A stretch of DNA of 64,000 bases from Lytechinus pictus (taxonomy: Eukaryota): the NCBI RefSeq assembly GCF_037042905.1, contig NC_087249.1, positions 3,534,001 to 3,598,000 of the forward strand, given 5' to 3'. This document shows, piece by piece, positions 23,909-64,000 of the stretch. Numbering within the stretch: position 1 is the first letter of the stretch; each line of letters begins with the position of its first letter. A model generated the notes under the pieces. The model had not been told where the DNA came from and did not search any database. It saw only the letters and a list, made by a program, of their open reading frames with translations. The translations under genes and the position numbers were made by a program.

Positions 23909-24953
23909 ATAGAGTGGGGATAACTAGAGAAAGAGCAAGAGAGAGAGAGTGAGTGAGAGAGAGGGGCAGACAGACGGGGAGAAAGAGAAAGAAGGGGGAA
24001 GGACAGGGAGGACAGAGATATGGGGCGTAGTAATATTTCCATCTTAAACATTATTCTATTAAAAAAGCCTAATCACTTTATCCGATATAAGTTACACATC
24101 CAATGTTAAATGCTGATTTTTCAGGAAACGAGAGAGGTTTGAACATTTTTCAATTTTTTTAATACATTTTTTAGGGGGTGGCAACCTCTAAAACAGGTCT
24201 TGTTGGCAAAAATAATAACAGTATTTGGGGGGGTAAATGATAAAAAAGAATAAATGAATATAAAAAGACATCAAGGTTTTATTTCTAAGTAATCACGGGG
24301 GAGTGGGGGGATTCCTTTTGCCTTTTCCTTATATTGGCGGCCCATCCGGGGGTTGCATGGGCCAACTTGGAATTGGGCACCGATTTTCAGTACCAAACAG
24401 GCTGAGACGATATGCATTACGACATTGCATCAGTTGTGTTTGAGGAATGATTTGTTTACACTAGAATTATTGACTCTTCTGGTAGATCGAATAAACAATT
24501 ATTATTTATCTTTATCTCTCGATAAAGCATTTACCTAAATAGCAATTACTCGTGACCTTTTGATGACATTAAGCTTTACAGTCTTCACAAACTTTTTGAT
24601 CACTCCCGAGCGAGTGATTATTGTTTCAGTAAAAACAAAAGAGAAGATAAGGTGTGCTCCCTACACATTACAGTCATGAAACCACAAAGGTTTTACCGTA
24701 AATTTGTCTCAAACTGCATGTTTAATATCTCAATATTTCAATGTAATTAAAGTGGATAACATTTGAACCTAGTTTGGGAAGTGAGACAAGGAATATTTCC
24801 CATATGTAATTATTTTTTTTTTTTAGGGGTGATTACATTTTAAAATATTGATTTCTTTAGGACGTGCAAATAGTGCTGAAATTTCTTCGGGAATCTTTTG
24901 ATTTTGAGCCTACTACCAACCCGGCAGACACGGTCAGTAAACTGAGGTTTAAG

Positions 24954-39900: not shown

Positions 39901-42900
39901 TCTCCTTTCTGATTCAACTACCCCCCCCCCTTTCTCCTTCAATATTCTTTTAGGCATTGGAAGGAGATCTCAATTCCGTAAAGACAGAAAGCGAAAAGCG
40001 AGTTTCAGAGTTACAGGAAGAAAATGATTTTATGATTTGTGAAATTGCATCTCTTCGCGACCTTTGCGTTGTAAGTAGCAAATAATTTTCCTGATATTCT
40101 ATTTATACACCATTTTTAATTTAAAAAAATGTTATCTCATTTATCTATCCAAAGAAGCTCTTTTGAGCCAATTTACAGGTATAGAAATCACGCCTTACAA
40201 TATTCTTATATTTATGATGTTTGTCCCCTCTCTCCCTAAGTGATGAAAATATTAACTAATTTATTCGCTGTTAGTGGAATTTAAGAAAGAAAAACACCAA
40301 ATACAATCAAAGTTGACCACACTGTATTCAGCAAGAGTAATTTAACAGCTCAATAAAAATTTCTTTAAAATGAATATAGCGAGAAAAAGAAAGAAACCTG
40401 AATAATATTATCGCTGATGCTAATAACAGCGCTTCGTTTATTTAGATAAAACGTTCGAGAAAAATGCCCTTAACAAAACTTTGGAACACTCATCTTTCAG
40501 GAATCGGAAGAGTCGATGGAATCTATGGCAGAAAGGAATGACCAACTGAAGCGAGTTTTGAGTCTTACCCAGGAAGAAAAAGACGATGATCTCTTGCATG
40601 AATTGGAGAAAAGTTTTCTACGATGCCAGGTGAAAAAGAACAAAAAGGAACATTTCAGATGAAAAAAATACTTGCATGAGTTTCATCATATTTAAAAGGG
40701 GTGTCAATGTGATATTAATACGAAGTTTTAATAAATGTAGCAAAATGACAACGGATAATAGGAGCGTTCTAGCATCATGAATCATCGTATTTTGTCGTAT
40801 GAGAATTTTTCACATCTTACTAATTTCTCTGAATTTTACATTAGGTGAGAAGCACAGATGTCTGACTTTTATTATAGTGATTGTTGAATGGCTGATTGAA
40901 ACATCCAACAAGTCCTTTCATGAAACAAAAACAAAAACACTCCCCATGCAAGTCATTTTCAGCTTCCACACAATAGTCATATTTAATAGACATATGGATC
41001 GATTAATGATTGACACGTTTCCCCTTTTCTGTTATTAAAATTAATGACTGATTAAAAGAGATGAAAATAATTAAAAATTTATATTTTTAAGGCATCTGAA
41101 GAATTATTCTTATAGAACTAATCTATATATATCTTTTTTTTCTTTCAGGATCTGGAAGATACATTGAAGCATGTGCAACTGGAATCGAAAGAAGCATCGA
41201 ATGTATGGAATCAAGAAAAGAAATGTCTCGTAGATCAACTCCAAGACCTACAACTTTCACCTAAGGTACGACAATCCACTGATATTCGTTACCACAAAGT
41301 AAAGTTTATTTACTTTTATGAGCATTTGTCTTTCTATCAAACAGTAGATTCAAGGTTGGTATCTGCTCCACAATCTTCCACCGACTTCCATTATTTTATT
41401 AAGAGTCCAAGACTTGTTGAGTAGGAAGCTTTCCCCTGATACCCCTTAGCACAGGCAGGTCTTTCAGAATGTTAGGACTCTCCCCTTGCCCGCTAGCTTT
41501 TCTCTCCAGTCCTGTAATTTAGATATTGATGTGTTGGGCAGCTTGGGCTTCATGTCCAAAGGTTCTATTGCTAATCAAAATATAAGCTCCTGAAACCAAC
41601 GTTGTCATGGTTGTGTTGGTCATGTAAGGTGATCCACAATTTGAAGTAAATAAGAAAGATTTTGTAATCAGTTATTTACCAGGATGAAGGTACCGTCTAA
41701 TAAGCAGTACATTCACATGTTTTAGGAGATGGGTTCCAGACCGGTTCAGGATTTAGGAGCTACCAACATGTTTCAAGAACAAATCTCTCAGTTCCAACAA
41801 GATAGGGAAGGATTAAAGGAAAAACTTCGAGAAGCAGAGAAAGAAAGCGCGGTAAAATTATTACCTTATTGTAATTTAGACATACTAAAGTAACACTAAC
41901 ATCATACAGTGTACTTTTAAACAAGTTTAACATAATGATTCTCTATAGTTTTCTGAAGAAATTTTGATAGGTTTAACGAATATATTGAATAACTCTTTGA
42001 AATCATAAATTTCAAGGCATCGCCGATGTGCGAATAATTAAAGAATTTAATGAACTATGTTTGTAGCATTCAACTTATTTTAGAGATTTTTAAACTCTAA
42101 CATCACTAACGTACACGAAGACTTTTAATTACTGCTTGATATTAAATTAATAAAAATGGTTATCACTTTACTTATCACTTAGGAACTTCGAGAGGAGTCG
42201 GCCTTTGAGATCCAAGAGCTACGTGAAACCTCTTGCAAATTGGAAAAAGAAAATACCGATCTCTTTAAAAGTCTTGGGCGCTGTCAAACCGAATGCAAGG
42301 TATGAGCTATTTTATTTATACTGTATTTATCTACGATAAGATGCAGTCTCGATTTACACTTTATTTATATACCATTCTTTTAAAAGCAAATTTTATGTAT
42401 AAATATCTTTTTATACAGGACCAAGATAAAAAAACAGTATCCTGATCTTTTTATCCTGTTTAAATATATGGGAACAAAAAAATAAAATAAACATAGAGAT
42501 GCTACATTAATCAAGACAATAGCTCACTTACAAATGTACCGATAATAAATCAATAGCAATGATATCGATAATCAGGATAATTCTAATTTTCAAGAGAAGA
42601 TCTATTTCATTATTTTGATTAAAATATTTATATCTATTTTATTCTGTTTCGTGTATGTGATATTTACATTGGTACACGATGCTCGTATACCCATCTGCAT
42701 AGTATTATATTAATTCCTAAGCTGAAAATGGTTGAATTAATTTGAATTCCAAGACAAATGTGTCATTTTCAGGAGGCCAAATCTAGGGCAGACGAGATGC
42801 ACGCTGCTACTGTAGAGCTTCAGGAAGAGATCGGAAAACTTCAAAATGAAAGGAAAGAGCTGAATGAAATACTGCAGAATTCTTCCCGAAAGCAGGAGGT

Positions 42901-45900
42901 AAAATATATGGAACAAATAAATATGATCTCATGAAGAATTATATAATTACAATAATGCAAACGAAATTATTTTTTTTTCAGAATATGCTACTCACTGATC
43001 CTGTGAAAACCGGAGAACACCATCTCACCGATGATTAATGCCTAACAACAGTTATACCTTTCAAGTGAAACAATAATAATAATGAAATAATTTGTCTTGT
43101 GAATTTGTCCTGGTAAGAAGGGATATAAGTGCAAACTTCAAAATATAGTCTTTCTTGGTCAACATGATCAATTTAAATGTCTATATCATTTTTCTGCCTT
43201 AACGTGTTTAGGAAGGATACTTGGATAGAAATAATCTAGATACTTCTTATTTGTTTGAAATACCTTAGAAAATTTGACTTTCTTCTATTTGTTTCAGAAC
43301 TTAACCAAACTCCAAGATGAATCATCGAAGTTGGAGAAGGAGAAATCAAACCTCACCAAGCAACTGGAGAGTCGCCAGCTTGTGTGCCAGGTGTGTGTGC
43401 CATTGGCAATTCATTCCAATTCCAAGTGATTGGTCTTTATTCATGCAGAGCACCCCAAAAAATCCTCCACATTTTCTTATGAAAAAAGGACGAATTGTAT
43501 AAAATTACACGACCGGGCCTTTCCTTTATATTCACACTCATACTACTTTGTCTTTCTTTAATAATAATTTCCCCCTTTTTATCGTAACTTGGAAAATATG
43601 GGGAGGCTCGTAACACCTGTCTATCTAAGCTGTACCCTTCCAGGTTTGGGCTATATAAAAGTTACAGATGAAGAGGCAGTTTCTAATTACGGATAGAAGA
43701 AATAACCTTGTTCTTTACATTCAGAGAACAATATTTTTTTTTAGCAAGATATAAATTTGTGTTTGACAGCAATTCGAAGAATATCTGGCCGCAGCGACCG
43801 AAGAAAGTGAGAGACACATGGAACTAGCTATGAAGCTGAAGGCAGAAAATGAAGATCTTTCCCGACAACTCACCAAGACTCAAAACCAGAAGGTATCAAA
43901 GCAGGAGACAAAAATCAATTTGATTATTAGCGATTTCATTGAATTGCGTTTGATGGTCATTTACACAATTTCTTACATTAAATTCGTGCCTTTAATTCCA
44001 GAGGGGACGGGACTGTGAACAAGTGGACCGCTTGTTATAATGATCGAAGCTTTTAAAATCCCAGTACAACGTTTTTTTTATATCATTATATTTCAATTTT
44101 TATTGTATTGTATTTTTATGGAGTTTGTAAACTGTTCTGTTGGAAATTAGAAAAAAAATAAAACTGAAACTGAACTGAAACCAGATTTCGCAATTACTAA
44201 CAACGATAAAAAGTCAGCCACTTATAACTTTATTATGATAAGTCAAGCCTTTTATAACAATTAAACATTAATTGAATCAAACAAAACCTTTATAATAATG
44301 GCATCAACTTTTTAAACTGATTTTAGGAATCAAGCTCATTTCAGGCAGTGACTCCTAAAACAGTTAAACGCACTGGCCAACAAGTCGAGGAGCTTCAAAA
44401 TGTCAAAAAGGGACTTGAGCAGAAACTCAGCAAGGCCGAAGACGAAAGCTCGGTAAGATTAAGTTGACATACCAGAGCTTATATTTCTATTCCCAGAAAA
44501 GACAAAATAAGATAGCTGTAATTAGTGTCATTTTCTAAAAGCAGGATATGATAAAGAAAGTCAAAACTCAACAATCTGGACCCCTTCCCCGTCAAATGGA
44601 TCGTTCCCCAATTTGCCATACCCAGAAATGTTGAAATCAGAAACAATTTGTTTCTAACATTGAATTCTTATAACCATGTATATTTATTACTTGATGTGAA
44701 TTTATTTCCATTCAAATGTGAACGACATATAAATTTTAACATATTAATAACAACAAATTCAGGAAATAATTAATGCAATAGAATGTCTTTGAATTAAGTC
44801 ATTGAATAAAATTACAAATTACGTCGAATCGAATCCGTTCGTAATTTCTAAGATGTACAAAATATACGTGTTTGGTTACCAAATCTTAATTTTCCTGCAA
44901 ATCACAATTAGCAACTGGTCATGAAAAATCAAATCATCGGTACCAGAGTGAAGGACTTGGAGAAGTTGGTGAAAGAGACTGTGGACAAAAACATCAAGCT
45001 TGAACATGAAATAAAGGTAATCAAGTTTGTTCGATTATTTAACTCCAAGAGTGGGGATTCTGCATGCCTGCTTTAAAAATGAGGTTACAGAAACCATTTG
45101 GAACTTTAGAAAACAAGAAATGAGACAAAATGCTTGGGCCTAGTAATAATGAGCAGAAACCTGTGGTCTTGTCATCTGACTACTCCATCCTCTTTCCTAC
45201 CGTCGCGTTATCAAAATTCTCTTCTATCACTTCGTCAGACCTCAAAGAATAGGAACACCAATTCGTATTGTAAGCTCTAAATGATGTTCAGTGGTGCTAA
45301 AAAGTTAGTAAACCCTACCGGAAAATGAACACATATACAGTCCATGTCTTTATGTGATATTGTTGAGTCAGGGAGCGAGGCTGTGTGTCGTGGGTGTGTG
45401 TCGATGATAAGAAAATGATGAAACAAAATTACCCCCCCCAAAAAAAAAAATTACAAAAAAGGTAAACTCAATTAAAAAAGAATATTAGTAACTCAAACAC
45501 ACAATTCATAAAATTCCCATCTCACATTGCAGAAAGCTACTTCCAAACCTGCTCAGTCGCAATGTGTCATCGAAGATCTTACTAAGAAAATGGACGAGCT
45601 TGAGAGAGAAAGGGAAAAACTGACAGAAAGGCTTCAAACTGCTGATATTGAAAGCAAGGTAAATAGTGATATGGAAAAAAAGAAGAAACAGGGGAAGAAA
45701 TACATAATAGAAATAAATTGATGGTCTCACAACATGATCAAGTTTGAATAAGTTTTTATCATGAACAGCATTGGAATGTATGAAGCAAGATGTGCAGTAG
45801 CAGACATCGGTGGAGAAAACTTGATATTAAGAACTATAGATGACTAATACAGTTTCAGGGTGCCGGATGTCGATACTTTTTTCTCATGAATATGAGACGT

Positions 45901-48900
45901 ATTCAGTCATGACTTTCTAGCTCTCAGGTGGTAAATCTGTCACAGAAGTAGGCTTTAATTTCCAGAGAAAATCATTTTGAATATGTTTCCACGTTAGGAT
46001 TTAACTGATAAAACCGAGGCAGCCTTGGAAAAGACGAGAGAAATGGAAGAGCTAAAGAATGAGGTGGAATTAAAGAACAAGAAACTGGAGTTCGATGTCA
46101 CGGTTGGATCTTACCTAGAATAGTTGAATATTTGATATTTGATACATACTGTCATTTCTCACTAGCATTATCCTCTTTTCCATTCATATTTCCAATTTCT
46201 AAATTTTTGCTTATTACCCTATTCTTAATTCATTTTTCAAATTCTTATACTCACCTTTCCCAACCACTGCGTTTTGTTTCGAAACAAAAAACAGCATTTT
46301 TACAATGGTTTGCATTGTTTTCATTGCGTCATATTATTACGGTTTGATAAAGAAACAAATAAATAAATCAAGTTTAAAGAATTGTTCAACAGAGCTAGCA
46401 TAGTAATTCAAAAAGAATAGAAATGCTACATTATTAGAAATAATTTATCTTATCAAGCTATTCTGATTGCCTACATTTATTCAGTTTACGAAGAACAAAG
46501 TAGAGACTGCATTCTCAATGGTCGATGATTACAAGAAAGATGTCGCCGATATGAAGGTCCATAACAGAGGTCTCAAAAATCAGGTGGATTTCCAGAAAAA
46601 TAAAGTTCAGGTGAGATGTAACTTGATACAACTTTGTTAAGATTAGTCTAGTCATGATATTTACTCGAGTTCCTTAAACACAGAAAATTATTACATATTC
46701 TTGACTGAAAATTTTCTTGTCGTTTTCTTAATATGTTGACTACATCCTGCAGGATCTTGAAGGTCAAGTGTCTAAGCTGAAGGAACAAAGTGCCTCGCTG
46801 GAAAAGAAACTGGAAGACGCAGAGCAAAGGGTAAAATACACGGAAGACCTTAAGGATAAAGAGATGGACTACCTTAAGGAGAAAGGGATGAACGACCTTA
46901 AGGAGAAAGAAACCGAAATTAAGAAAGTGAGATACCAACTCGAGGCAAAGACGGTAAAGTTTGATGCGATGGAGAAAGAGAAGAATAATCTGCAAGGGAA
47001 GGTCTCTGAGATGAGGAAGCTAAAGGAGGTACTGGAAGTAAAAGTAGCAAAGGCCGAGACAAGAGAGAAAGGGGTGGAGGATGAAATGGAGGTAAGTATG
47101 CCTTTAAAATGCTTGTATGGTTCTAAGAAGTTCGTTCTTGAGATAATGTGTCATATCAAACGCTGATCAGGGCATATCTTGTCAGAATCCAAGACCAGGG
47201 GCTCTCATGGGTTGAACCATGCTGAACTTCGGACCCATTCTTCTTGAAGTTGCATTTCTCGTGTAAGTTGATTTTGTCTATGTCCCCCGCCCGTCTTCCC
47301 CACTAGCGAGAGTAATACTGTATCGGCCTTCTTTAGGTTCATGATACGTCCTCCCTGCAAACCCTTTGAAATAATCTTTTTATCAGTTCATTGAAAAATT
47401 AGTTGCAAATATGTTTATCTCTTTATTTATTTCACACTATTATACTATAGGCTATGAAAGCTGCTCTGAACACGGCAGCTGTTGAGTATGGTCTGCTTAC
47501 TAATGTCGGGGATACACTCACAATCACAGACTTGTGCCAGTCACTTGATGGCATGAGGCAACTCAATGCACATATGAAACTCGAGATGATCGACTTGGAG
47601 CAGGCTAAAGCCAATCTTGAAGAAATGGTAAGTGAAATATGTAGAGTTAAAATAAAAAAATATATACCATGAATGCGTCGATTATGATAGTATGTCAGCA
47701 GTCAAACCATTAAATTGACAACCAAAGGTAGCAAAAGCTTAAATGAAACAGAATTTGAGAAATCGAGAGGCATACATGGGTAAAAGAAATTTGGTTCCGA
47801 CACTGAGAAATAGCCATAGAATCCATCCTCCCACAGTGGAGCGAAATAAAATTCTTCGACCTTTTATTAACGTAATGCTTTTTATTCTTTTATAATATTA
47901 ATCTATTTCTTTTTTAATGAAAATATATATATATAAAACAAAATAAATGTATATCATACTAATCTTGTTTTACTTCATACAGTTGAAGACGAGTGATGCT
48001 TATTTCAAGAGTGGGGATTCTGTTGACGAAAAAAGGTAAATCGTTTATACTGTTAATTTATTGATACTAGATAAATAATAATAGTCAAACCATTAAGTAA
48101 AAGCTCAGATATAAATACTTGCTGCAACACGCACCATCGTGAATAATACTAAGCTCAGATATTTTGTTAAGTGTTTGATTTGCGTGTTTGCGTGTTGCAG
48201 CAAGTATTTAAAACTCAGATATAAATACTTGCTGCAACACGCACCATCGTGAATAATAGAAGCTCAGAGATTTTGTTAAGTGTTTGATTTGTCGTCGCTA
48301 ATTGTTGGCAAAGGGTCATAAGATCGTGAAAGTTGAAAGATGAATCAAATCAGGTGAAATCGTCAGTTAATCCTAATCCAGTGCTTCTCAACCTTTTTTT
48401 TACTCGAGGAATCTAAGAGTTTTTTCGAGGCCGACCTACTAAAATAAAAAAAAGGATATGACTACTTGTCTCGACTCAAAAATTGTCTCGACAATTATAA
48501 AGAGCATATTAGTGCGTAACTTTATGATCTTCTGCTGCAGTGACTGAGCCAAAAATTGAGGGGGTTTGATACGACAGTTTTATTACAAAAATCCAAGTTT
48601 GTGATAGATTTTGACACAATATTAAAAAGATAATATCATATTTCACCCTTATCCCTTTTCTTTCCTTTCCTCTTTTTTTTTCTTGGTCATGAAATATTTG
48701 GGGCCAAGAGCCACCCCCCCCTTATCTGTATGCAAAAGACTTTTCAATAGTAGATTTGTTTCCTCCCTCACCCTTTCGCTTTAAAACACGGTCCATTTTG
48801 ATGAAAGTATGTTTCATGAAAATTTTCCCCCTATTTATTTTTCTTCTCTGGAGCTTCTCGCGGCCCACCGGTTGAGAAGCGCTGTCCTAAATCATACCTG

Positions 48901-50394
48901 CTGTATTGGTTATCATAAAACATAATAAAAACTCAGTAAAGAGGTTTTAAAAATCCAAAACAACCCCTTAATATCCCGTTTTCATTAATACTAAGATCTT
49001 ATTCATGTCTAAATTGCAGCATCGGAGCGCGTGAAAGGACTGAACTGAAGGAGACAATAAAAGATCTTCGATTCCAGGCTTACAAACAGGAGCATCTCAT
49101 CAAGAAACTCAGATATGAAGTCTCAGAGTGAGCACTATACATCACAAATATTCTATGGATAAGTACCTTTAATCACTGAAGACTCCACGTTATTGCCATT
49201 TTTTCCAAGATAAAAGTATAGCTTGACCTACTAAACATGTGTTTTCTTTGGGTAACGCGTACCAAGTGTATGTGCCAAACAGTTTTGATAGGGTCTTTCA
49301 CGAAATATGATAAATGACATAATTTGGCGCGAAGCGTAATCATTCTACCTTTTAATCCCGTTTTTCCCACCAATTTTTACCTGTAATGTATACTTTCATC
49401 AAGCATTTTCATTCCCTTTCTCCACTTATGCGTTTTTAGATTTCACGATTTCATATTGAAAAAGCAGGACACGAAGTTTAGCGACATGCCTTATGTCGAC
49501 AGAGCAGTGGTCATGCGTATTTACTCCGATGTCGAACTCAAATCCATCGATGCTGCTGACCTCTCCTTCTTACCTAAAGCCCAGGATGATGACGACGAGG
49601 ATGAGATCGGGAAAGGTGCTTTCGGGAAGGTGTTCTTGAGGCAATACAAAGGCCAGGCCGTCGCCGTCAAGGTTCCGTATATAAGCGAACGGGTGAATGA
49701 TGAGGATGCTACGAAGCGGATGATGCGAATCAAAGCAAACCATGCTCGTACCACCATGGAAGCTTTAGTTCACCTTGCACTTGCTGACCATCCATCTTTC
49801 CCAAAGACAATCGGTGTCGTTGACATTGATGGGGCCCCTTCACTCGTTCTGGAGTTCCTCGGCGACAAGGAAACAGGTGACGTCTTTTCCCTTAGCCAGG
49901 CCATCAAACATCCCAGCCCTTCACTAAGGCAGAAAGACTGGTTTGGTATCATCACGGACATCGTCAACGGAATGAAGGCAATGCATGCTAAAGGTCTCCT
50001 CCACAACGATCTAAAACCCAACAACGTTCTTTTGCAGTGGGACTACAATGATAAAAGATGGCATGCTTTCATCATTGATATGGGCAAAGTGTCCACCCAG
50101 ACCGTACCTCTCAAACATCGTCACATGCCTGACGATGACCGCGAGCAGTACAAAGAAGGCTCCATGTTTCAGCATCTAGCTCCAGAATATATGTTGGACC
50201 AGCAACCCATGTCTGTTCAAACTGACATCTTCTCTATGGGAAAGATAATTGGTCGGATCGAGGGAAAAGTGATGAACAATCGGATCTTGAGAGAGTTAGT
50301 CGCTGAGATGACGAATGTTAAACCACGTCTTCGACCATTATGGAAGGACATTGAGAAGGCAGTCGCAAAAGCTCGGAAGAAGTGTCTGTCATGA
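24954..50394 (+). CDS. Giant coiled-coil protein with C-terminal Ser/Thr-type (non-RD) protein kinase domain, ~43 coding exons, ~1,940 aa
   Basis: Exons in one continuous frame: 24954-25001, 26755-26895, 27376-27516, 28110-28181, 28603-28725, 29187-29246, 29522-29626, 30048-30152, 30812-30916, 31110-31211, [gap], 32551-32625, 33011-33115, 33538-33642, 34243-34338, 34523-34627, 34814-34897, 35137-35262, 35517-35642, 36140-36235, 36559-36687, 37189-37293, 37736-37852, 38426-38554, 38888-39004, 39429-39554, 39954-40070, 40501-40629, 41149-41265, 41726-41851, 42183-42299, 42773-42898, 43298-43390, 43770-43892, 44327-44452, 44912-45016, 45533-45658, 45998-46102, 46485-46610, 46753-47091, 47451-47627, 47983-48035, 49020-49127, 49440-50394. 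The peptides are E/K/L/Q-rich with heptad periodicity, and splice phases are consistent through to the kinase exon. Confidence 0.85.
26289..26515. mobile_element. Short MITE-like repeat (CAGGGGCGGATCCAGG family)
   Basis: Starts CAGGGGCGGATCCAGGATTTT and ends in a degenerate inverted CCTGGATAAGTGTCC. A related copy lies at about 28780-28998 (CAGGCGTGGATCC...GGATCTGCTCCTG). Confidence 0.55.
31517..32353. other. Assembly gap (837 N)
   Basis: Run of N inside the coiled-coil kinase gene; it may hide one or more exons. Confidence 1.
33811..33995. repeat. (AGT)n imperfect microsatellite
   Basis: AGTAGTAGT array in an intron; it explains the poly-L and poly-T ORFs in the ORF track. Confidence 0.9.
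48101..48291. repeat. Local direct duplication with an intervening inverted segment
   Basis: An ~80-bp unit (CTCAGATATAAATACTTGCTGCAACACGCACC...GTGTTTGATTTG) occurs twice. The spacer TGCGTGTTGCAGCAAGTATTTA is the reverse complement of the unit's start. Confidence 0.85.
48379..48884. mobile_element. hAT/Charlie-like MITE
   Basis: TIRs CAGTGCTTCTCAACC / GGTTGAGAAGCGCTG; near-identical 8-bp flanks TCCTAATC / TCCTAAAT(C). Confidence 0.8.
49440..50394 (+). CDS. Intronless terminal exon encoding the protein kinase domain of the coiled-coil gene
   Basis: Contains GKGAFGKV (Gly loop), VAVK, the alphaC Glu (MEA), HNDLKPNN (catalytic loop), DMG, HLAPE and DIFSMG. The acceptor TTTTTAG|A at 49439/49440 is phase 2 and compatible with the upstream exon. 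Confidence 0.93.
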
Positions 50395-53145: not shown

Positions 53146-56100
53146 TTATAAAACCAAACAAGTTGAAGATTTCTTGTTCCTTTTCTTTTCCGGAGAGGGA
53201 GACGGGGTTTTGTCAAGAGGTTTATTGTTCTCTTCTTTTCTTGGTTTGTTAATGTCAGGTGTGGTCTGGGGTCCATCGTCACATGCTGGTGACGTCATAT
53301 TCTCCTGTCCCGTGTCTGGAAAAGGGGAAATAACTCAATCAATTAAAAATAACAAAAAACACAATTTTTTTCATCACTATGACACGAAATCTGAGGTTTT
53401 AATCCCTACCAGATTTATGTAGATCAGTCTATCTTACATATCAGATTTGACTTAATCCATGTACCAAAAAATGCGAACAAATTACAATAATAGGCCTAAT
53501 GATTGTGATGGTAATGCCAACGGTATTGGTGATGATGATGATGATGATGATGACGACGATGGTTATGATGATGGCAATGATAATATCTATGGAAGTAAAT
53601 GGATGACGCCACACTAATCAAGGAGAGGGGGACGGGGACGGAACAACAGACCTCCTCTCCCCTAAGCAATTGGATCACTTTTTTCATCTATTCGTCAGTG
53701 ATAATTCAATTCAATTCAATTCAATTCATTTTATTGTCATAATGATGTGATAGTAATCAAGCGTGATAAATGATAACTGAAAGATTTGAACCTTACCTTT
53801 GCCTCCATCACCAATCCCTGGCAGCTCTGGCGTCTCGGTCTCAGCAGGTCTTTGTGGTTTGTTGTTCATATTATCCTGATCCTCAAGAACCTCAACCCCA
53901 AGGGTCGGCTCAGCATGTTCCTTGATCTTCTCCACCAGTTCTTCGAACTTCTCATCATCAAAGTTGGCCACAGTGGTCTCGTTAGTAAAGTCAATGTAGA
54001 GGAGCTGTGTGAAGGTCATACTCATTGGTCCTTCCGGGGGCCAGGTCATTTCTTCAAGAAGCAGGGGAATGATGGGTTTACGAAGTGCATCAGAAAGACT
54101 GATCTCCCGTCTGCAGTTCGCAGAGAGGGCGTACTTTGATGTCACACATGAAACCACAACCTGAAACAGTTAAAAGTCGAAGAAAATTTAAAACTGATAT
54201 CCTCGGAAACGGTATCATAAACTGAACTGTCAGTTTCATAAGACAAACAGAAAACCCGAAACAAAATGTTCACATACAACAATAAATCATAAAATTAGAC
54301 ATATTATGACACATTTACATCGGATTCATTTAAATCGATTGTTGGCCTGTAACTGGTTAGTGATACATACTTTTTGAATTTTGGATGATTTATATAGACT
54401 GCTTATAAGAACTCTTGCTTTCAACCAAGAATGTAAACCCTTGAATTGGTTGCTGCAATCAAGATCGAGTATTGTTAAAGCCGCCTGCTCATTTAAAGTG
54501 ACTAGATCATTTGGGGTTAGTACTTAGCCTTACACTTTCAAGGTTGAGCAAAGAACAAGTTGTAAACAATGACGAATGCCATACATACGTCCATTTCATT
54601 CAGAACAGATTAGCTTTGAAAGAAAAAAAAAATCTATGAAATATACTAAATTTCACTCTCCGTGTTCTAGATTAAAAACTATCTCACCTTTGCATTTCTT
54701 ACACCTTTATCAATCTTGGAGTAGAGTGGATCCCCACCACCCATTTGATTGATGTCTAACCAACAGTGGTACCCTAGATCAGTGAGACGAGAGAACAATC
54801 TCTGTATTTGTGGTTGCTTGTCCCATTGTTAAGAGATGAATACGGTTGGGGGATCCACAGATTCCTGGGATGAAATAAACAAGAGATAATTTCAGCAAAT
54901 CATAGGTCAAGTAAAATTAAAAATAGGCTTGACGTGAAGAGAATCGCAGGATTGTAGATGAATAATACATAAGCATTGTTGAAAGGAGAGTAGAAAACTA
55001 GAATATAATATCAAAGGACACAGAAAACGGCAATTGTAATATTTGGAGCTCGTTAAGTGGCATCAGTGCATAACATTTGAGATTAAAAGCAGCTCCAAAC
55101 ACGTGAATGAAAACTAGATTGTAGGCCAATCATAAGGGCTCATTTGACACTGAGGGTTGATCCAATGTTTTTGGAAATAGAAAGTTGAACTTTGTCATTT
55201 ACCGTAGTTTGATTTTGCTGAACACCAGGTATGTTCTTTGTGTCTTCCGATACCTTTTTCACCGTGGCTGGTTTGTCTTCTACCTGAGGAATCCAATTAC
55301 GGTACTCTAAGTAGAAAAAAGGATGTAATATCATATTTTCGTTTTGACAAATAAAATATTAAAGCTCCGGGTCTGGAATAAAATCACATTGATACTGAAT
55401 TAATCATATGTGCTTAATTTTAGTATACCATGCATACATAACGATGTCTGCAAACAAATCTCAAACATTTTTCATATTTTCCCCGGTGGATTTAAGTGCC
55501 ATTATCCTCTTAAATGTGACACTCAGAAAAGTATGAAGGTCACCTCCGGGAGATATGCTAACCTTTTTTTACGCTGTGTGATTTTGTAGCCATTTAACAA
55601 CTTCTATTCAAAATCGTATACATTTGAAATGTTTATTTTATATTTTGAGATGACAGACTTCAGCATTCTTCTCACCGTCTTACCTTCAGATATCATACTC
55701 TCCTCCGGATTTGCGTGGTAAGAAATCTGTCCGAGAAGCTCCGAAAACTTCGGATCTTCCCAGAACTTCTCACCCCTGACGTATTCCTTGTCGTTGTAAA
55801 ACTGTATGTAGAGAAGCTGAGCAAACAGCATACTCATTGCGCCCTCAGGTGGCCACTTGGTGTGATCTATGAGGACGGGGATGATAGGTTTGTTTAACAG
55901 GTTGGCAAGATTAACCTAGAAGATGAAGGAAAGAAGAATACTGTTAGAAAATTGGTTATATGACCTGGCCTATTAGGTAGACTGGAGCTGCTGCGTACAA
56001 CATGTAAAAGACTTTGGTGTCTATTGGAAATGTTAGATGGCTTACTTATTCCGCATTATTCTGTTTCGTAGGCCGAACACCATTGCATTACTATTATGAA

Positions 56101-59100
56101 TTTTAAATGTATTTTGGTCTTAGAAAATTAAAATTGTACATACAAATATTTTGTTAGAATAAACATATATATATATAAATATAATTTAGATGAATATTGA
56201 GGAAAGTTTATTCTGTGCAATAACTACACGAGCTACAACCTACAAAACTAGCACGTGAAGGACTGTGCTCCAAACATTATCATCAACATGTACATACTTT
56301 TATCATCCATGTTCAATAGCGACTAAATGCTTAATGACTTCTATTTATATGATTTATCATTACCAAACTGTATAGCTATACCAGCTGAAAATCGATATAG
56401 AATTAGCATTGCATTGGATGTAAATTCTCATGACTGAATAAAAATAGTTTTCACAAGATGTGATAAAAGAATTGTGAAAAGGGTTATAATGCTTTAAAGC
56501 TCTTTCAGAATTAAGATGTTCCCCCAAAAGGAAAGATTTCGACACCGAATTATGAAATAAATCTCAATACCTCCTTGTTGCAGTTTTCCGAGTTCGAGTA
56601 TTTTTCCGTCACCATACAGAGTACCACTTTGGATGATCTCATGCCCTGGTTGATCTTAGCGAATAACTGATCTCCTCCACCCATCTGACCAATGTCCATC
56701 CAGCAGGGAAACCCGGCCATCTCAAGATGCTTTCTGATGGCCTTCACCTCGGGCTGGTGGTCCCACTGATAGCTCAGGAATACTGTTGGAGGTATTCCAG
56801 AATCGTCCGAAGGGGCTTGAGGTACGAGCATTTCTAATGTAATAAAAAGAAAACGTTGTTGCCTTGTAGTTATGTAGGTGTTGATATCAGCTATCTTTCT
56901 ATTAAGCGGCTCTCGTTACCAACCATCATGACCATGCGGCTAAAATTATGTCAAACTCGGGCAAACTAATGTTCGAATAATTAGAGCGTAGTAGTCAATT
57001 AACAGGAAATTAACCAATGAGAACCATGTACCCAATTAACTAGACCATGGATCCTAACTAGACTGCATGGTAAATCTGGTTCGTGACCAGATAATGTTCT
57101 ACTGGTGGCAATATATTTAAGAAGATGATTATTAAAGAAGTTTGGGGTTAAAGTTTGCTTTGGATAATTTCCAAGGTAGAAAATCATGCACTAGGAAGTA
57201 TTTCGTGCATATGTATTCCTAACACGAAAACGAAACTTGAATCAAAATTATGTACCTGCTTCTTCTAGAGATTGCGTGATTATTTCTGCTGCATCAGTTC
57301 TTCCCATATCCTCTAGCGCACCAAGAATGGCATAGGTAGCGTCACTACTCTTGTGAGTTGTGTACCATTCGGCTAGGATGGCCATGGTAGGGTCTGGTGA
57401 TAGGGCCCAGTTACGGATGTCTTCACCCGAGTAGCCGAGACGAACTGCCAAGAATCGCCAGTCATGTTCGTGTTCGGGGTTCAACAGCTTTGATACGTCA
57501 CGCGACCATTTAGGCGCGTTAGTTATCGTCTACAAAAGGCAAAAGTTGTAGAAAACTTATCTATTAAAAAAAATCACAAATGGTTACAGGACGCAATGAA
57601 AAATATGAGCTCTTTCTGTTGGTTTGGTCATATACATTAGTTTTGATAAGAATGATTTGATTCAACATCGAAATCGTATCATGTACAGGAATGACAGTGA
57701 AGTCGCAAAGACACAAGCTATCCTTTTGATGTCAACATGCCAATATTACACGGATTGTCTCCATTGCAAACCTATGCTTTCCAACTTACAAAACAAGAGG
57801 ATGCCATTTTATCCTATCCCACGTACAAAAAGGGGCGTAAAGTTTTATGTAGAGGTACCATGGCAATGATATCTTATTCAAGGAAATAAAAGTCGGTTTG
57901 GCGGGTTCAAATCTGATGAACTATGTATTTCACAATCTTTCCAAAGCCCCCTTTTACCTTATGGTCGATCTCTTCGACCTTTTCGACCGTCTCATCGACG
58001 ACTTCTTCTAACTCATCCAGTCTCTGGCCCTGCTCATTGACGTCTTTCTTGACGTTCAAAATCTCGTCACCCTGTTCTGTCACAGTCTCGTCAATTCTCG
58101 TTATGTCGTTTTCTGTGTTCGTCACGCGAGAATCCAAGTTATCAATATCTTCCTGCTGCTCGGCCACGTCTTTGCTGAGACTTTGCAAGCTAAAAAAGTG
58201 TAAAATTTTTTTTTTAGTCGTTTCAAGTTCAATCTACGAAAGCCGTGGAAAGAAAATATACTGTCTCGATAATTATTGGCGTGCTACAAATACTTAGATT
58301 TCATTTCCAACATGATACTGTGCTTTCCATTCTCCTCACACGTTGCTTGTTGTGGAAACTGTATTGTGATTATATTCAAATGCAGATACTGATGATAATA
58401 GTGATAATGTTGATGGGGGAATTTAAAGTTATGATAGCGTTTACGAATAACAATAACTCCACAAATTAAGGTAGATTTAAACATAAATGCCAAATGTGGC
58501 AATATGACAAAGCGACCTCATGCAGAATCAAGCAAAATGATAACCGAATTGTGTGTCTGTATACAGGACTGAAATTGTGTATTTAATCATACATCATTAT
58601 CATAACCAAATCAATTATATTCTATAACTATGTTTTGCTTAATTTTTTTTTTATACCTTACCAAAACATTTTCTTCCCAATTTCACCCGAAGATCATTTA
58701 GGATTTACCTTCTGTCTTCCAAGAAATCGATCAAGGATTGGACCAGGTCTGGAACACCCATCTGCTGACATGTCTTTAGTTTCTCTAGTTGTGGTCGATA
58801 AACGGCTAGACATTCCTTATAAGCCATGCCAACCCGCTTTGCCTCCATCAGTATTACAGAGATCCACATAGGATCTATCGTCTTCACCTTGTCAAAGAGG
58901 ATCTTTAGACACCTTGTAGCTTCTTTCTGTGGGAAAGAACAAAGGATTTGACATAGTGATACCGACAAGGATAACAACATAGGTCTGTAGGCCTTCTATC
59001 CTGCTAATGGTCATGGGGGAGCGGGCCTTCGCGCGTGCGGGGCTGAAAAATGTGGAACTCTCTTCCACAGGGTTTAAAAACTTAGACATCAGCAACCACC

Positions 59101-59617
59101 TTCAGGGACATCCTGAAGATGTACCTGTAATATAATGTATAAGGTTTTTTGGACAGACAACCATCTATGTATGAAGGCTATCCTTGTATAGGTCCAATTT
59201 GCTTTGTACTTTTTCCCTTTCTGTATTTTTCTCTAAAGCGCCTTCAGCATCTAAATAAGATTGAAAGTGCGCTTTACAAATTCTATGTATTATTATTATT
59301 ATCATCATCTCCCCAGTACCTTATTTCACTTATCAAAAGTTATACCCCTTCAAGATCTTTACGTTCCTCCTTTTCCAATTCTCTTGTTACCCCCAAAATT
59401 TCCAAAACCTGGGGTGAAAGATCATTTGTTTACTCATCCTCTAAGCTATGGAATAGCCTCCCTCAAAACATCAAACAATGCTTGACTTCTGAAACTTTTA
59501 AACATTACCTCAAAACATTTCTGTTCAATTCTTCTTAATTTCTTTTATAATTTCCTAAAAAGCGCCTTGAGCAATCTACAGAGTGGATTTGGCGCGATAT
59601 AAGTCTAATTATTATTA

Positions 59618-59691
<74 letters not shown>

Positions 59692-60717
59692 AGACCGGAC
59701 CCATATCCCAAACTTGTCACCGAACTTGTAAAGTATGAACGACGTCTCTTACCCAACACCATCATATTTTCGGCTACGTCTTAATGACCATAAATGAAGG
59801 ATAGATCTCTGATCGTTTTCTTTAGAGGTAGTGCCTTAGGTAATGTGTTTGATAATTACCTCGCTGGTGCAACCGACGCTTGCAATGATAGTACATGCAG
59901 AAGACACCGAGAAAGCCGACAGTTCCCATGCTTTCACACATTTATCTATGTGTTCGACAAATTTGATGGCATATTCACGAGAGATATCGGCGAGTGCCAG
60001 AAAACAGAGGGTCGCAAGGGTTGGATCACACAGGTCCTCCATCATGAGATCGATGTGAGAGACCAGAGCCTGCAGAAAAATTATTCAGAATCAAAGGGTT
60101 TTATTCAAAGAATTACATATAGACGAGAAGGAGCAATTAAACCTTAAAAATGAATGCTCATTGGTACTTTCTATAGTCTGGAAATGAAGTCACATTGGTA
60201 CGTTCTATTTCTGTGCAAGGTGGAAAATGTCTGAGTGGATTTGATAAAGGGGGCGGATGCCATCCCTTCTCCCCTTTCTACACTCATAGCCGGATAGGGG
60301 AGTCTGCCCATATTAATTAGAGCTATATCGGAGAACATACAAGTAATTATCCGTTACTCTTTGAGTCTTCTTTTCTCTGCCTGTATGAAAAATTCCTGGG
60401 AAAAATTCTAAGACCCCTCCAATTACATTTAACGTTATTAAGTAAAAACCGGTGAAAAGGAAATTTTGACTTCTTCTTTTCCATCAGTATTTCAATAATG
60501 GAAGGCAAGGCTACAAAATCATACCTCGGGATTTTGTTAAGCAACTTCATCCAAGAGAAGGTACATATAGGTCTTGTCATCATGACCCATGTCTTCCATC
60601 TTTTCTGCAAGTTTGTCCATTCGCGATAAAATCACTTCCGGTTTGTTCTTATAAATTCCAGTTAAAGCACCTATACGAATATATTGCAAAGAAATATATT
60701 AAAGCAATTAAGAATTT

Positions 60718-60748
<31 letters not shown>

Positions 60749-63700
60749 AATGCCAATACAGTATTCCAATACAGTATTAGTATTACTAGTATTACTTATA
60801 TGGCATAAGAAACAACCCTCACCCACATACCCATAAAAGCACCTACAGTGCTGTGAAGCCTTAATAACCAGAGACTGATCAGAACGTACAATAGCAACAG
60901 GGATCTCCGTCAGTGGAGAAAATGCCAGTCAGATGGCGAATGGAGAATGCAGAAATACATCCAATAACTATCATACAGAACCCCTAAGAAAAAAAGATAA
61001 TAATAATAATGATAATAATGATAAAAGAAAATTACGAAAGACATATTCCATATCCATGAAAAATACCTACTGCAAATGTGTGTGTCTTCACATTTGTTGC
61101 TCAAGTAGGCCTCCACTATGGCGTCACCATATGCGACAAGGATATCACCGTTTTCCCCAAGCGCTCCTAAGGTATTACCCGCTAATTCCTCTAAGTCTCT
61201 GACGTCACATGTGAGAAGTTTTAAAACACTTGGAAGGAGATCCTTGTATTTATTCACCTTGTCAACGTCCTAAATCGGAGATAGATATCATATCACTTTA
61301 TTGTTGCCTCAGAAAATCAGCCACTTAACTATTTCACTCTTTAAATAAAACATGAAAGGACATGAAAGAAAAATGTACATAGAGAACTCTGACTTGGTGA
61401 AATCAGGGTTAGACCTACAAAATAAAAAATACTGTAAAGGAAGAGAGTTATATTATTTAGGTAGCAATCACGCTATATTGAATTTAAGGCAGCGATATTT
61501 TGCATCTTTTCCAATCCAATTTAGGCAAGATATATTTAATTTCAATATTCACGAGTAGTATAAGAAGTCATGGCTAAAGAATCATACCTGCAGTATATAA
61601 TCAGTGATAATTGTGCTTATTATATCTCCATGGACTGAGAGAGGTGTCTCATCGCCCTCAAGCTCTTGCTCCAGACAGTATTCCAAAATGCTCTTTAATT
61701 GACTCACACAAGATTTCCTGTGATAAACAACAATAATTATTTTCATTTTGTCGAACACAAGTAATTGAAAACAAAGAACTGCTGAAAATTAATGGGGTAC
61801 CGTAGAATTAACTTGCAGTACTTTCACTATAAGCTTCCAATCTTATTCATGAGAAAATAAGATTACTTCTTGAGTAGTTTGAAAATACTGTGGTCTATCG
61901 AAAAGGTCATGGCTCCCAGGAGAATGAGACTAAAAAAGGTTTCATCGAAGTATGTTTCCTAGATCAACTCACCAAAAACAAATACCAAAATCAATTTCAA
62001 TACACTTCCCTGTATAAGATATGGGAAAGTCGATTAGGTAAAAAAAAATGCATTCAATGTATAATGATCCATGTATCTTTCTTGGTTGGACAATGTTTAA
62101 TCTGACGTTGCCCAAAGGATTGCACAGTAGCTGGTTACACAGAATATCAAAACTGCCAAATGTATAATCCGTTGCCCAAAATTGTCGTCAAAATGTATTA
62201 AAGCATATATCATGCTTTTACCTTGCCATTCGTAATATTTCAAGTAAATCAGTATTATCACTACTACTATTCCTGATATCTTACCCAGCATTTTCTAGCA
62301 TGGCACAAGCTGGCATGGCTTGTGCCAGAGCCTTATGGTCCAGGTTGTGTTCAAAGTCGACGTCTTCACGGCGTAACCATTTGAAAAATATTTCCAGGAC
62401 ATCAGGAATAAGCTTTTCAGTACCCTGTAACAGAGGGAAATGAAATGTTGGGTACCAGTGTTGGGGACCATGGTTGGTGATGACGTCAATATAGTAACGA
62501 TGGTGATTCGTGAAGAACGAAGTGAGTTTTTGCACCGAGACGCAGAACATATCCTATAACACATCTTAATGCATTGATAATGCAAGTGCATTTTTAAATA
62601 ATATCGCTAGCACTTGTCTGAGGGCGTTCATTCAACCTTACCAAGAATGCATTATTGAGGGCCAAACTTTAATTGAATGATGCACAACTTTAATATGGAA
62701 ATTATGTCTTATTAAAAATGTGTTTCAATATAAATCAGTGGCATTACATGAAATAAATATATATAATTTTTTTTATAATCATGAATCACTGAAGTTTAAG
62801 TTAGTCAACTGCAAAAAAAGAGAGGAAATTTCGTTTGATAAAACTGTGATATGCCACAAGCTATATTGTATCACCGTATAGAACGTACAATATACACACC
62901 AGAAACATGAAATGGTTTGCGTAAAAAAAGTTGCAGAACAAAAAGCACGTATCATGCAGGGGTTTCATGGGAAATTTTTACTCATTATTGCGTAAAATTA
63001 ACATAGTATTAGGTTTTTTTTTTACCAAAACGAACATGCATTCAATTTAATCCAAATTTTTGTAAGCCTTTCTTATAATGAAATGGAATGAAATATGGTG
63101 GGGAGTGGTGGAAGGTATTTTAAATATATAAACTGTACCTCCCATGACATCTCATTTGACTCAGCAATGGCAAGAGCAACAACGAGATGCATGTCTGAAC
63201 TGCTCTGGAGACATGACGAAAGCAACCGAACGAATGACCCCTGAACTTTCTTGATAATCTTGTCGCGACTAAAATGCAATAAGGAAGATAAAAGTGAAGA
63301 ATAAAAATGTTATCGGTTAAAACTGAATGTGAAGACATTTTCTAATATTTTGAATAAGTTACGAAATTTTCCCATTTTGACTTAATGAAAAAAAATGACG
63401 ATAATTTTCACAAGGTCAGAAGATTTCACCACTACCACCACCATTTCTGCACAAAAACTCCTTGTTTCAAAGCAATCTTGAGCTCACTATTACCCTGTGT
63501 CCAAGACAACGCAATACAGAAAGTTATGTATAGAGACGTGATTGAGGTTCAATTTTTCAAGCTTTACTTAAGGCCACCATCACGATAAAAATCTTTAGGA
63601 TAAGGTAAAATTTGAAACGCTATCATATCATATCTAATTTGCATATTCACATAATGTGTCGTAACAATAAATCATACGCTGTATCGTATTGCAGTATCAT

Positions 63701-64000
63701 ATATATTTAGAGTCGACTGACATCTGCTTATATCTTCAACAACAACAAAACAAACCTTAAGCGCCATTATCATGATTATCCAGAAAAAACCCCAGACTCT
63801 CATAAAAAAAATCATTTAATAAACAGTCTCTAGGTGATGGGTATTTGTTGCGCCTATGGTAACCATGAGTCGTCTAATAGGTCCGTGTCTATATCAGTCC
63901 ATTTACTCACCTACAAGCGTTGATGATATCTGAAACTGTATCTTTGAGTGCGCTGCCAGAATCACCCCATGACACATGCTTCGCCTCGTCAGACTCCTTC
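53146..64000 (-). CDS. VEPH1/Melted-like ARM + coiled-coil + Death + TIR + TIR + CaaX protein; 5' end lies beyond the window; two in-frame TAA codons (null allele, pseudogene, sequencing error or readthrough)
   Basis: Exons, all GT-AG with matching phases: >64000-63911, 63268-63139, 62424 (or 62553)-62285, 61717-61588, 61269-61071, 60670-60525, 60069-59860, 58926-58709, 58189-57958, 57529-57256, 56833-56571, 55915-55684, 55306-55203, 54864-54688, 54160-53797, 53315-53146. About 1,025 codons are visible. Death domain: [11 protein letters not shown]...PTMAILAEW...[16 protein letters not shown]1: VFLSYQWD...[12 protein letters not shown]...[13 protein letters not shown]2: VFIS*QWD...[12 protein letters not shown]...[10 protein letters not shown]. 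The protein ends [13 protein letters not shown]. Confidence 0.88.
58985..59301 (+). mobile_element. Older L2-type LINE 3' fragment
   Basis: Degenerate [19 protein letters not shown]....[11 protein letters not shown], then AAAGCGCCTTCAGCAT...GTGCGCTTTACAAAT and an (ATT)n tail. Confidence 0.7.
59302..59690 (+). mobile_element. Young L2-type LINE 3' fragment with long (ATT)n tail
   Basis: Reads [21 protein letters not shown]...[12 protein letters not shown]...[10 protein letters not shown], then the 3' motif and ~85 bp of ATT repeat. Near-identical to 17385-17675. Confidence 0.88.

Follow-up and report, generated by a model that had tools for sequence, protein, structure and literature searches.

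A sea-urchin gene for a predicted lipid-anchored protein with a VEPH1/Melted-like solenoid, a coiled coil, a Death domain and two SARM1-class TIR domains

What kind of protein carries a long helical N-terminal region, a coiled coil, a Death domain and two TIR domains, and does the gene that encodes it in Lytechinus pictus specify an enzyme, a signalling adaptor or nothing functional at all? We have addressed this question for a locus in a 64,000-nucleotide stretch of the L. pictus genome, referred to here as the window. The original prediction, made from the DNA letters, was of an independently assembled relative in kind of SARM1 that might consume NAD+. We find that the locus holds a genuine gene, expressed in the sea urchin, whose product is predicted to be lipid-anchored.

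Gene model and interrupted reading frame

The gene lies on the minus strand, as do all features described below, and our spliced model comprises 18 exons with a coding sequence of 1147 codons; all 17 introns are GT-AG and there are no frameshifts. The model is colinear with the database protein P0178, from which it differs by 9 mostly conservative missense changes. The gene had been taken to lie within the window, but it starts 3.3 kb past the window end: exon 1, exon 2 and the rest of exon 3 lie at G000:C5:3598001-3601331. Exon 1, which carries the ATG (G000:C5:3601162-3601331), and exon 2 (G000:C5:3600362-3600482) are placed by colinearity with P0178 and by their GT-AG introns. Exon 3, also colinear with P0178, occupies 63911-64000 of the window and 63911-64074 in extended coordinates.

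The proposed order of ARM region, coiled coil, Death domain, TIR, TIR and CaaX box on one transcript is borne out both by the spliced model and by RNA. Eight splice junctions are supported by RNA contigs from two studies, and stranded raw RNA reads agree with a minus-strand transcript. The supported junctions join the ARM exons to the coiled-coil, Death, TIR1 and TIR2 exons, two sets whose possible division between separate transcripts had been named as a weak point of the original prediction. The claim of one open spliced frame did not hold for the assembly, in which two in-frame TAA codons interrupt it. The first is codon 396 (60537-60539, in exon 8), where P0178 and the orthologues have lysine; the second is codon 923 (54829-54831, in exon 16), the tyrosine of the FISYQWD motif of TIR2, which in the assembly reads FIS*QWD.

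Two stop codons within conserved exons, in a genome that holds three intact paralogues, could mean that this copy is dead or dying, with both nonsense codons real, the protein cut at residue 395 and function left to the paralogues. The RNA bears directly on the second stop. Plus-strand position 54829 is G in the RNA of three runs (depth 21 of 21 in X1, 4 of 4 in X5 and 3 of 3 raw reads in X23), such that the coding strand has C in the RNA and A in the assembly and the codon reads TAC, for tyrosine; across the exon that holds this stop, RNA of the three runs is otherwise identical to the assembly. At the first stop, two sampled words of a 60-base probe both occur in some RNA runs and only one of them in others, a pattern that, as far as two words go, could reflect a segregating allele; a search for RNA-derived open reading frames spanning this codon returned P0178 and one paralogue and nothing else. 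Against decay stand the preserved GT-AG introns and unshifted frame, the small number of missense differences from P0178, and a dN/dS of 0.016-0.033 between the window gene and its paralogues (dS above 1). Neither stop occurs in the three paralogues, and P0178 is intact, as is P0187, the orthologue in L. variegatus. We conclude that the gene is not a decayed pseudogene, because RNA has TAC at the second stop, the paralogues and P0178 are intact, and dN/dS is about 0.03; we regard a dead or dying copy as improbable and a fixed loss of the gene as an unlikely source of the TAA codons. Most likely the two codons arose as an error of the consensus, or the animal that was sequenced carried a null allele. 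An altered genetic code was also considered and rejected, since the two TAA codons replace different residues (lysine and tyrosine) and one of them is TAC in RNA.

Domains of the predicted protein

The N-terminal 540 residues form an ARM/HEAT solenoid in the structural model (pLDDT 91.5), in agreement with the long helical region first proposed. Exon 4 (63139-63268, residues 152-195) begins the part that resembles VEPH1 and Melted, and the solenoid continues through exons 5 (62285-62424), 6 (61588-61717), 7 (61071-61269), 8 (60525-60670), 9 (59860-60069) and 10 (58709-58926). A loose RNA-contig end at 60670 runs into the end of exon 7, an RNA joint links 60525 to 60069, exon 9 has RNA joints at both ends, and exon 10, likewise joined by RNA, is 50% identical to the Diadema and Patiria orthologues. 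The suggestion that this ARM region is of the Melted/VEPH1 type is supported as a structural match: VEPH1/Melted models are the top matches in two AlphaFold libraries, the second being a cluster library, at E values of 5.6e-10 to 1.5e-7 over 352-414 aligned residues, whereas generic ARM/HEAT proteins score about 1e-5. When residues 166-541 are superposed on VEPH1 3-369, the rmsd is 5.6 A, the identity 17-18% and the E value about 1e-9. At the level of sequence, Pfam searches of 28 family members gave for the solenoid just sub-threshold or generic solenoid families (Adaptin_N and INTS7_N in some), and for the N-terminal region the neighbours in a protein-atlas feature search were all generic and HEAT/MMS19-like. 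SARM1 chains are not among the best 50 PDB matches of the solenoid, an absence that counts as weak evidence. The likeness to VEPH1 and Melted lies in a shared N-terminal ARM-like domain, to which may be added that all have a C-terminal membrane-binding device, predicted in the case of the window protein. In VEPH1 and Melted that device is a PH domain, for which the window protein has no Pfam match; its C-terminal half is made up of the coiled coil, the Death domain and the TIR pair.

Exon 11 (57958-58189, residues 543-620) was said to encode an acidic heptad coiled coil, and this assignment is consistent with weak matches to coiled-coil families alone and with a model of the exon as a single 77-residue helix; RNA joints flank it. 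The Death domain proposed for exon 12 (57256-57529, residues 621-711) is recovered by Pfam at an E value of 2.8e-14. Against the PDB it matches p75NTR at 1.3e-7, NRADD at 7e-5 and MyD88 at 0.3, and, judged by these matches, the domain most resembles the p75NTR type. Death domains of this type are not known to form large helical oligomers, and the domain is therefore a weak candidate for an oligomeriser.

The model orders the C-terminal portion as helix, Death domain, TIR, linker, TIR and tail. Each of the two TIR_2 domains is spread over two exons: TIR1 over exons 13 (56571-56833; TIR_2 E value 1.2e-17) and 14 (55684-55915, placed by homology and RNA), and TIR2 over exons 16 (54688-54864; 2.1e-6) and 17 (53797-54160; 7.9e-7), the last of which also begins the disordered tail. 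Exon 15 (55203-55306, with RNA joints) encodes the disordered linker between them (pLDDT about 30). The HMMER search that the original prediction had proposed matched both TIR_2 and Death, TIR_2 twice; over the two domains of P0178 the TIR_2 score (PF13676, gathering cut-off 28 bits) is 164 bits, and single exons reach 64.9, 28.7 and 30.0 bits. The motifs W.D..M.GG and S.NC..E that had been read in both TIRs are there, but FxSY fails in TIR2, where the assembly has the stop.

Assignment of the TIRs to the SARM1/bacterial class is upheld by the best matches among solved proteins. Among proteins of solved structure, SARM1 is closest in sequence to TIR1 (E value 4.6e-5); for the TIRs together the nearest by sequence are SARM1, PdTIR, AbTIR and TcpB, and the nearest by structure SPARTA TIR-APAZ, SARM1, TIR-1 and AbTir, with the prokaryotic TIR structures superposing at an rmsd of 2.0-2.9 A across about 145 residues. 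The glutamate expected at the catalytic position of helix alphaC is likewise present in both TIRs. In a HMMER alignment the glutamate of 'NKE' (E799, the last codon of exon 13, 56571-56573) falls on that of SARM1 'HKE' (human E642), and E799 and its TIR2 counterpart E989 (54104-54106) are invariant in 37 of 37 family proteins from about 8 phyla. Also invariant in the 37 proteins are the GGGD loops and the S.NC..E motif, and every member has the BB loop D-I-G-Q-M-G-G-G-D. SARM1 and the bacterial and plant TIR NADases have a WxxxE motif, with the tryptophan four residues before the catalytic glutamate. In all 37 members both TIRs instead read N-C-x-x-E, with asparagine in place of this tryptophan. 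NADase activity of the TIRs is plausible, and the asparagine could indicate a different substrate or no catalysis. A prediction of the TIR1-TIR2 complex scored 0.00, a result that counts neither for nor against their pairing.

Exon 18 (53146-53315) encodes a disordered, polybasic tail. The proposed prenylation signal is present as a CaaL ending, CLVL (53149-53160), followed by the stop codon (53146-53148). A cysteine at -4 is kept in the family: 33 of the 37 members have a CaaX box, X being mostly L, I, V or M, and upstream of it lies a stretch rich in lysine and arginine.

The family and its names

Including the window locus, the L. pictus genome holds four paralogous genes. The family ranges over echinoderms, hemichordates, amphioxus, molluscs, annelids, nemerteans, flatworms and rotifers; there were no vertebrate, arthropod or nematode members among the matches that we looked up. 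In a tree of the TIR domains, TIR1 and TIR2 form separate clades with 100/100 support each, and both clades contain deuterostomes and spiralians. This is an old, bilaterian family of signalling proteins.

To call the module 'undescribed', as was done at first, is too strong, for orthologues are annotated in many phyla, some of them as MyD88-like. A Strongylocentrotus purpuratus member bears the database name 'MyD88-like protein L1', and Aplysia LOC101850562 was described as MyD88-like, with an Armadillo-type fold (PMC9334734); in both species the proteins given this label do belong to the family of the window gene. A literature search turned up no publication from which the S. purpuratus 'MyD88-like L1/L3' entries derive and no enzymatic, localisation or oligomerisation study of any family member. 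The ecTIR-DC families (Gerdol et al. 2017, as cited in PMC6321704) are defined as TIR proteins widespread in invertebrates and absent from vertebrates, and the range so defined fits that of the window family. We also considered a conserved partnership with a neighbouring RIPK1-like kinase gene and rejected it, as the 36 genomic relatives of the kinase gene do not lie beside the three paralogues.

A nucleotide hydrolase or an adaptor

The reading that we set out here, to which we give an even chance, is that the protein is a membrane-held TIR nucleotide hydrolase, activated by clustering and equipped with a regulatory solenoid, the stop codons being an error or a null allele. Its tail would be geranylgeranylated, and the protein would thus be held on the cytosolic face of a membrane, where molecules would be clustered by the coiled coil, perhaps with help from the Death domain. 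Clustering would allow the TIRs to meet through their invariant glycine-rich BB loops, and the invariant glutamate of each TIR would then cleave NAD+ or a related nucleotide, leading either to its depletion or to a signalling product. The solenoid would serve to regulate the protein or to bind a ligand, a role suggested by the ARM domain of SARM1. The original prediction went further, in that the solenoid might be autoinhibitory and TIR1 and TIR2 might together form a composite active site.

The protein could also be a non-catalytic adaptor, its TIRs docking on those of Toll-like or IL-1R-like receptors or of other adaptors and its Death domain recruiting a Death-domain kinase or some other partner with a Death domain, so that the whole would act as a membrane-tethered scaffold for NF-kB/MAPK-type signalling. 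This we take as a serious possibility, though not one that we favour. The pairing of a Death domain with a TIR defines MyD88-type adaptors, in MyD88 as in the window protein the Death domain is N-terminal to the TIR, and the label is the one used by databases and by one survey. The absence of the WxxxE tryptophan points the same way, as does the fold of the solenoid, since known relatives with a solenoid of the VEPH1/Melted type use it as a scaffold for binding proteins. The TIRs themselves argue otherwise. By published criteria the TIRs of MyD88, TLRs and IL-1Rs are defined by Box 2 RDxxPG and Box 3 FW (PMC7075850), and both are absent from the TIRs of this family. No MyD88 or TLR TIR falls below an E value of 1 among PDB sequence matches or appears in the best 50 structural matches. 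The Death domain is also nearer to those of p75NTR and NRADD than to that of MyD88, and the window protein, about four times longer than MyD88, has the solenoid, coiled coil, second TIR and CaaX box over and above the plan of MyD88. Finally, a glutamate that is invariant at the catalytic position of both TIRs across about 8 phyla would be unexpected in a pure scaffold.

The closest parallel to the hydrolase reading is SARM1, together with TIR-1 and dSarm, in which, as in the window protein, N-terminal helical repeats and an oligomerising element (putative in the window protein) precede a C-terminal TIR of the same class whose catalytic glutamate aligns with that of the window TIRs. The differences lie in the other parts. 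As had been proposed, the coiled coil and Death domain stand where SARM1 has its SAM domains, and Pfam at E values up to 0.1 finds no SAM domain in P0178 or in five relatives. SARM1 has one TIR rather than two, lacks the predicted CaaX anchor, and has tryptophan rather than asparagine four residues before the glutamate; the window solenoid matches VEPH1/Melted best. The prokaryotic proteins SPARTA TIR-APAZ, AbTir, PdTIR and TcpB/BtpA, which are the best structural matches and among the best sequence matches of TIR2, share the glutamate; they have the WxxxE tryptophan that the window protein lacks, and the latter has a eukaryotic multi-domain architecture.

To our knowledge, no animal TIR protein other than SARM1 has an enzymatic mechanism that is well established. 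In the family described here, TIRs of the SARM1 class, with the glutamate invariant in both copies for >500 million years, are mounted on entirely different regulatory parts and a predicted lipid anchor. We tentatively suggest, while holding it somewhat doubtful, that the family represents a second, SARM1-independent TIR nucleotide hydrolase switch of animals, ancestral to bilaterians and geranylgeranyl-anchored, with tandem N-C-x-x-E TIRs, a VEPH1-like solenoid as its gate and coiled-coil/Death clustering as its trigger; it could act by making a signalling nucleotide and not by plain loss of NAD+. If the TIRs are active, there would be a second path in animals from a sensor to NAD+ chemistry, at a membrane, and the 'MyD88-like' label of invertebrate immune-gene surveys would conceal a different kind of protein. 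If they lack activity, what remains is an unstudied adaptor that is nonetheless conserved across many phyla. We note that laboratory breeding and gene editing are both possible in L. pictus.

Gene structure and transcript evidence

The coding pieces named in the original prediction all lie on the minus strand of the window, and Pfam recovered there the Death domain (57251-57529, E 2.8e-14) and both of the TIR_2 domains it had described: TIR1, whose first half is at 56553-56915 (1.2e-17), and TIR2, at 54682-54828 (first half, 2.1e-6) and 53729-54169 (second half, 7.9e-7). The coiled-coil segment (57910-58233, also minus strand) gave weak Pfam matches to coiled-coil families and nothing else. 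With the database protein P0178, marked as the window's own, as a guide we built a gene model of 18 exons, with a CDS of 3444 nt and GT-AG at every intron; the gene extends past the window end, exon 2 and an exon starting MAEQFEELQ being located in the adjoining 10 kb of contig sequence.

RNA-derived contigs from sequencing runs X1 and X5 (two studies) contain eight junctions exactly where the model predicts them, part of which are backed by raw stranded reads from run X23. One contig covers exons 8, 9 and 10 together with the coiled-coil exon and reaches into the first 103 nt of the Death exon. A second connects the Death exon with TIR1, and a third runs from TIR1 through a linker exon to TIR2. 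Because these contigs bridge the ARM, coiled-coil, Death and TIR exons, they speak against separate transcripts for the ARM and Death-TIR exons and bear out the proposal of a single spliced transcript. First mates of the stranded library fall on the plus strand only, which fits minus-strand RNA in a standard stranded library. We note that RNA reads also pile up within intron 9, in the stretch 59300-59700, at a very high-copy repeat, followed by an (AAT)n-type microsatellite; the summed word depth of this repeat in a DNA run is 24,000-38,000, compared with ~30-80 elsewhere. A run of 837 N (31517-32353) is an assembly gap or masked sequence.

The spliced frame originally described is broken in the assembly by two in-frame TAA codons that had been overlooked. 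The first, at 60539-60537, is Lys in orthologues and in P0178, and the second, at 54831-54829, takes the place of the Tyr in the TIR2 motif FISYQWD. Every RNA source has another base at 54829 (X1, 21/21 depth; X5, 4/4; X23, 3/3 reads), giving TAC. Leaving the stops aside, nine residue differences, mostly conservative, separate the window from P0178; both stops are absent from all three paralogues, the L. variegatus orthologue is intact, and dN/dS against the paralogues is 0.016-0.033 over 1410 nt, with dS saturated. Together these observations argue against a decayed pseudogene. We take the two TAA codons to reflect either a mistake in the assembly or a null allele, the RNA reading of TAC concerning 54829.

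Relationship to known TIR and solenoid proteins

In the model, the C-terminal half opens with a 77-residue helix and a six-helix Death domain, continues through TIR1, a linker without order and TIR2, and closes with a disordered tail of 90 residues; the solved structures that match it best are SPARTA TIR-APAZ, SARM1, C. elegans TIR-1 and AbTir. By sequence, TIR1 best matches SARM1 (4.6e-5), and the matches of TIR2 are to TIRs of bacteria, including PdTIR, AbTIR and TcpB, with no MyD88 or Toll-like receptor TIR among the sequence matches of either; the predicted SARM1/bacterial class is thus upheld at both levels. E642 of SARM1, the Glu of its 'HKE' motif, is the catalytic residue of that enzyme, and the family's invariant Glu aligns with it, placing the Glu of the alphaC motif where the original prediction had put it. 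For the Death domain the matches are p75NTR (1.3e-7) and NRADD, with MyD88 reaching only 0.3.

The N-terminal 545 residues are predicted with high confidence to form ~30 helices (pLDDT 91.5, pTM 0.85). Among solved structures this region matches generic solenoids (karyopherins, the PP2A A subunit, beta-catenin; E ~1e-5 to 1e-4). In AlphaFold Swiss-Prot the top seven places go to VEPH1 from four vertebrates and to Melted from fly and worms (5.6e-10 to 1.5e-7), query residues 166-541 aligning on VEPH1 3-369, followed by generic ARM proteins at 1.5e-5; the AlphaFold cluster library gives the same ranking. The fold comparison thus supports the suggested Melted/VEPH1-type ARM. Pfam found no sequence-level family match for the N-terminal region of family members.

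The window gene is not a SARM1 orthologue, since it lacks SAM domains and has an apparently different solenoid and two TIRs rather than one. Nor is it a member of the MyD88 family, because Box 2 and Box 3, which mark a MyD88-type TIR (PMC7075850), are absent and its Death domain is nearer that of p75NTR. Nevertheless, an S. purpuratus member is already deposited as 'MyD88-like protein L1', and Aplysia LOC101850562 (P0010) is among the 'MyD88-like proteins with an additional Armadillo-type fold' (PMC9334734). Judging from how they are described where cited, the 'evolutionarily conserved TIR-DC' families of Gerdol et al. 2017 very likely include this one. The module, which had been put forward as possibly undescribed, is thus already on record. 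Our literature search found no functional study of any member, and we regard the family as catalogued but mislabelled and uncharacterised, with an architecture based on a TIR of the SARM1 class.

Family range, constraint and possible mechanism

Searching without a profile from a single TIR exon gave 1770 proteins, the top scorers mostly having two TIR matches. Database look-ups identified full-length relatives in crinoids, sea urchins, starfish, sea cucumbers, hemichordates and amphioxus, as well as in gastropods, bivalves, annelids, one nemertean, one flatworm and rotifers; no vertebrate, arthropod or nematode member was among the ~40 proteins looked up. The architecture, for which a search across metazoans had been proposed, is therefore present in many invertebrate groups and not confined to the window gene. 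Those full-length relatives scanned with Pfam share the order coiled coil, Death, TIR_2, TIR_2. S. purpuratus also has a short relative, 'MyD88-like protein L3' (P0031/P0157, 279-282 aa), with one TIR_2 84% identical to the window TIR1 and no Pfam Death match in its 100-residue N-terminus; this protein could be a paralogue that has been truncated, or its gene model could be incomplete.

The 37-member alignment shows very high conservation of the Death domain and of both TIRs. Among the residues that never vary are Y733-Q-W735, G763-G-G-D766, S793, N795, C796 and E799 of TIR1 and their counterparts in TIR2, including E989. Separated TIR1 and TIR2 domains form two groups in a tree (100/100 support), each containing deuterostomes and spiralians, so that the TIR duplication predates the split of these lineages. 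Outside Bilateria the tandem TIR_2 module also occurs in other architectures, inside a giant ankyrin-repeat protein of the cnidarian Hydractinia (P0067, 3650 aa) and in chytrid fungi (P0074, P0129), and so may be older than the full architecture. A Cys at C-terminal position -4 follows a K/R-rich stretch (K-S-[KS]-x-C) in 33/37 members, and four shorter or partial gene models end without CaaX. Most CaaX members have L, I, V or M as the last residue; Leu at this position directs geranylgeranylation.

The genome holds four paralogues: the window gene on C5, one on contig C15, annotated as P0175 (Lytechinus pictus LOC129277962), and two on contig C8. Their Death exons (57256-57529 in the window; L006, L007 and L008 elsewhere) encode 99% identical protein from DNA only 81-88% identical (dN/dS ~0.005), a constraint much tighter than in the rest of the protein that suggests a shared, highly constrained partner. 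The two C8 copies (G000:C8:27.42-27.44 Mb and 39.30-39.32 Mb; L015-L018) encode nearly identical protein, the exons of both matching P0180 at 94-100%; either a segment was duplicated recently or the assembly contains a haplotype twice.

The analysis establishes the architecture of the window gene and the evolutionary constraint on it. Beyond this we infer, with roughly even confidence, a protein whose polybasic tail would be prenylated and hold it at a membrane, which would be clustered by its coiled coil and regulated by its solenoid, and which would act through TIR-TIR assembly, the invariant Glu of each TIR cleaving nucleotide as in SARM1 and prokaryotic TIRs. This catalytic model is weakened by the replacement of the Trp of WxxxE, found in TIR NADases, with Asn. 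Its main rival, a non-catalytic membrane adaptor, is a lesser but serious possibility that agrees with the Death-plus-TIR logic and with the scaffold nature of VEPH1/Melted, but the class of the TIRs and the invariant Glu in both copies sit poorly with it. The catalytic hypothesis for this family is sharp and testable.

Genomic neighbourhood

A neighbouring plus-strand gene (38375-50391) converges tail-to-tail with the TIR gene. Its exons at 38375-38668, 41122-41421 and 46732-47163 encode coiled coil, and an exon of 335 aa encodes a protein kinase domain (best solved match RIPK1, 4.8e-13; Pfam Pkinase, 1.8e-19). None of the at least 36 related kinase exons in the genome, which include a tandem array on contig C7 (~28.97-29.01 Mb), lies beside the three TIR-gene paralogues. 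Upstream of the TIR gene's first exon are two weak phospholipase A2-like exons on the minus strand, both under the Pfam cut-off (L003:9363-9665, G000:C5:3607363-3607665, E 9e-7; L004:1880-2155, G000:C5:3609880-3610155, E 8e-5), which are probably part of another gene, for a secreted PLA2.
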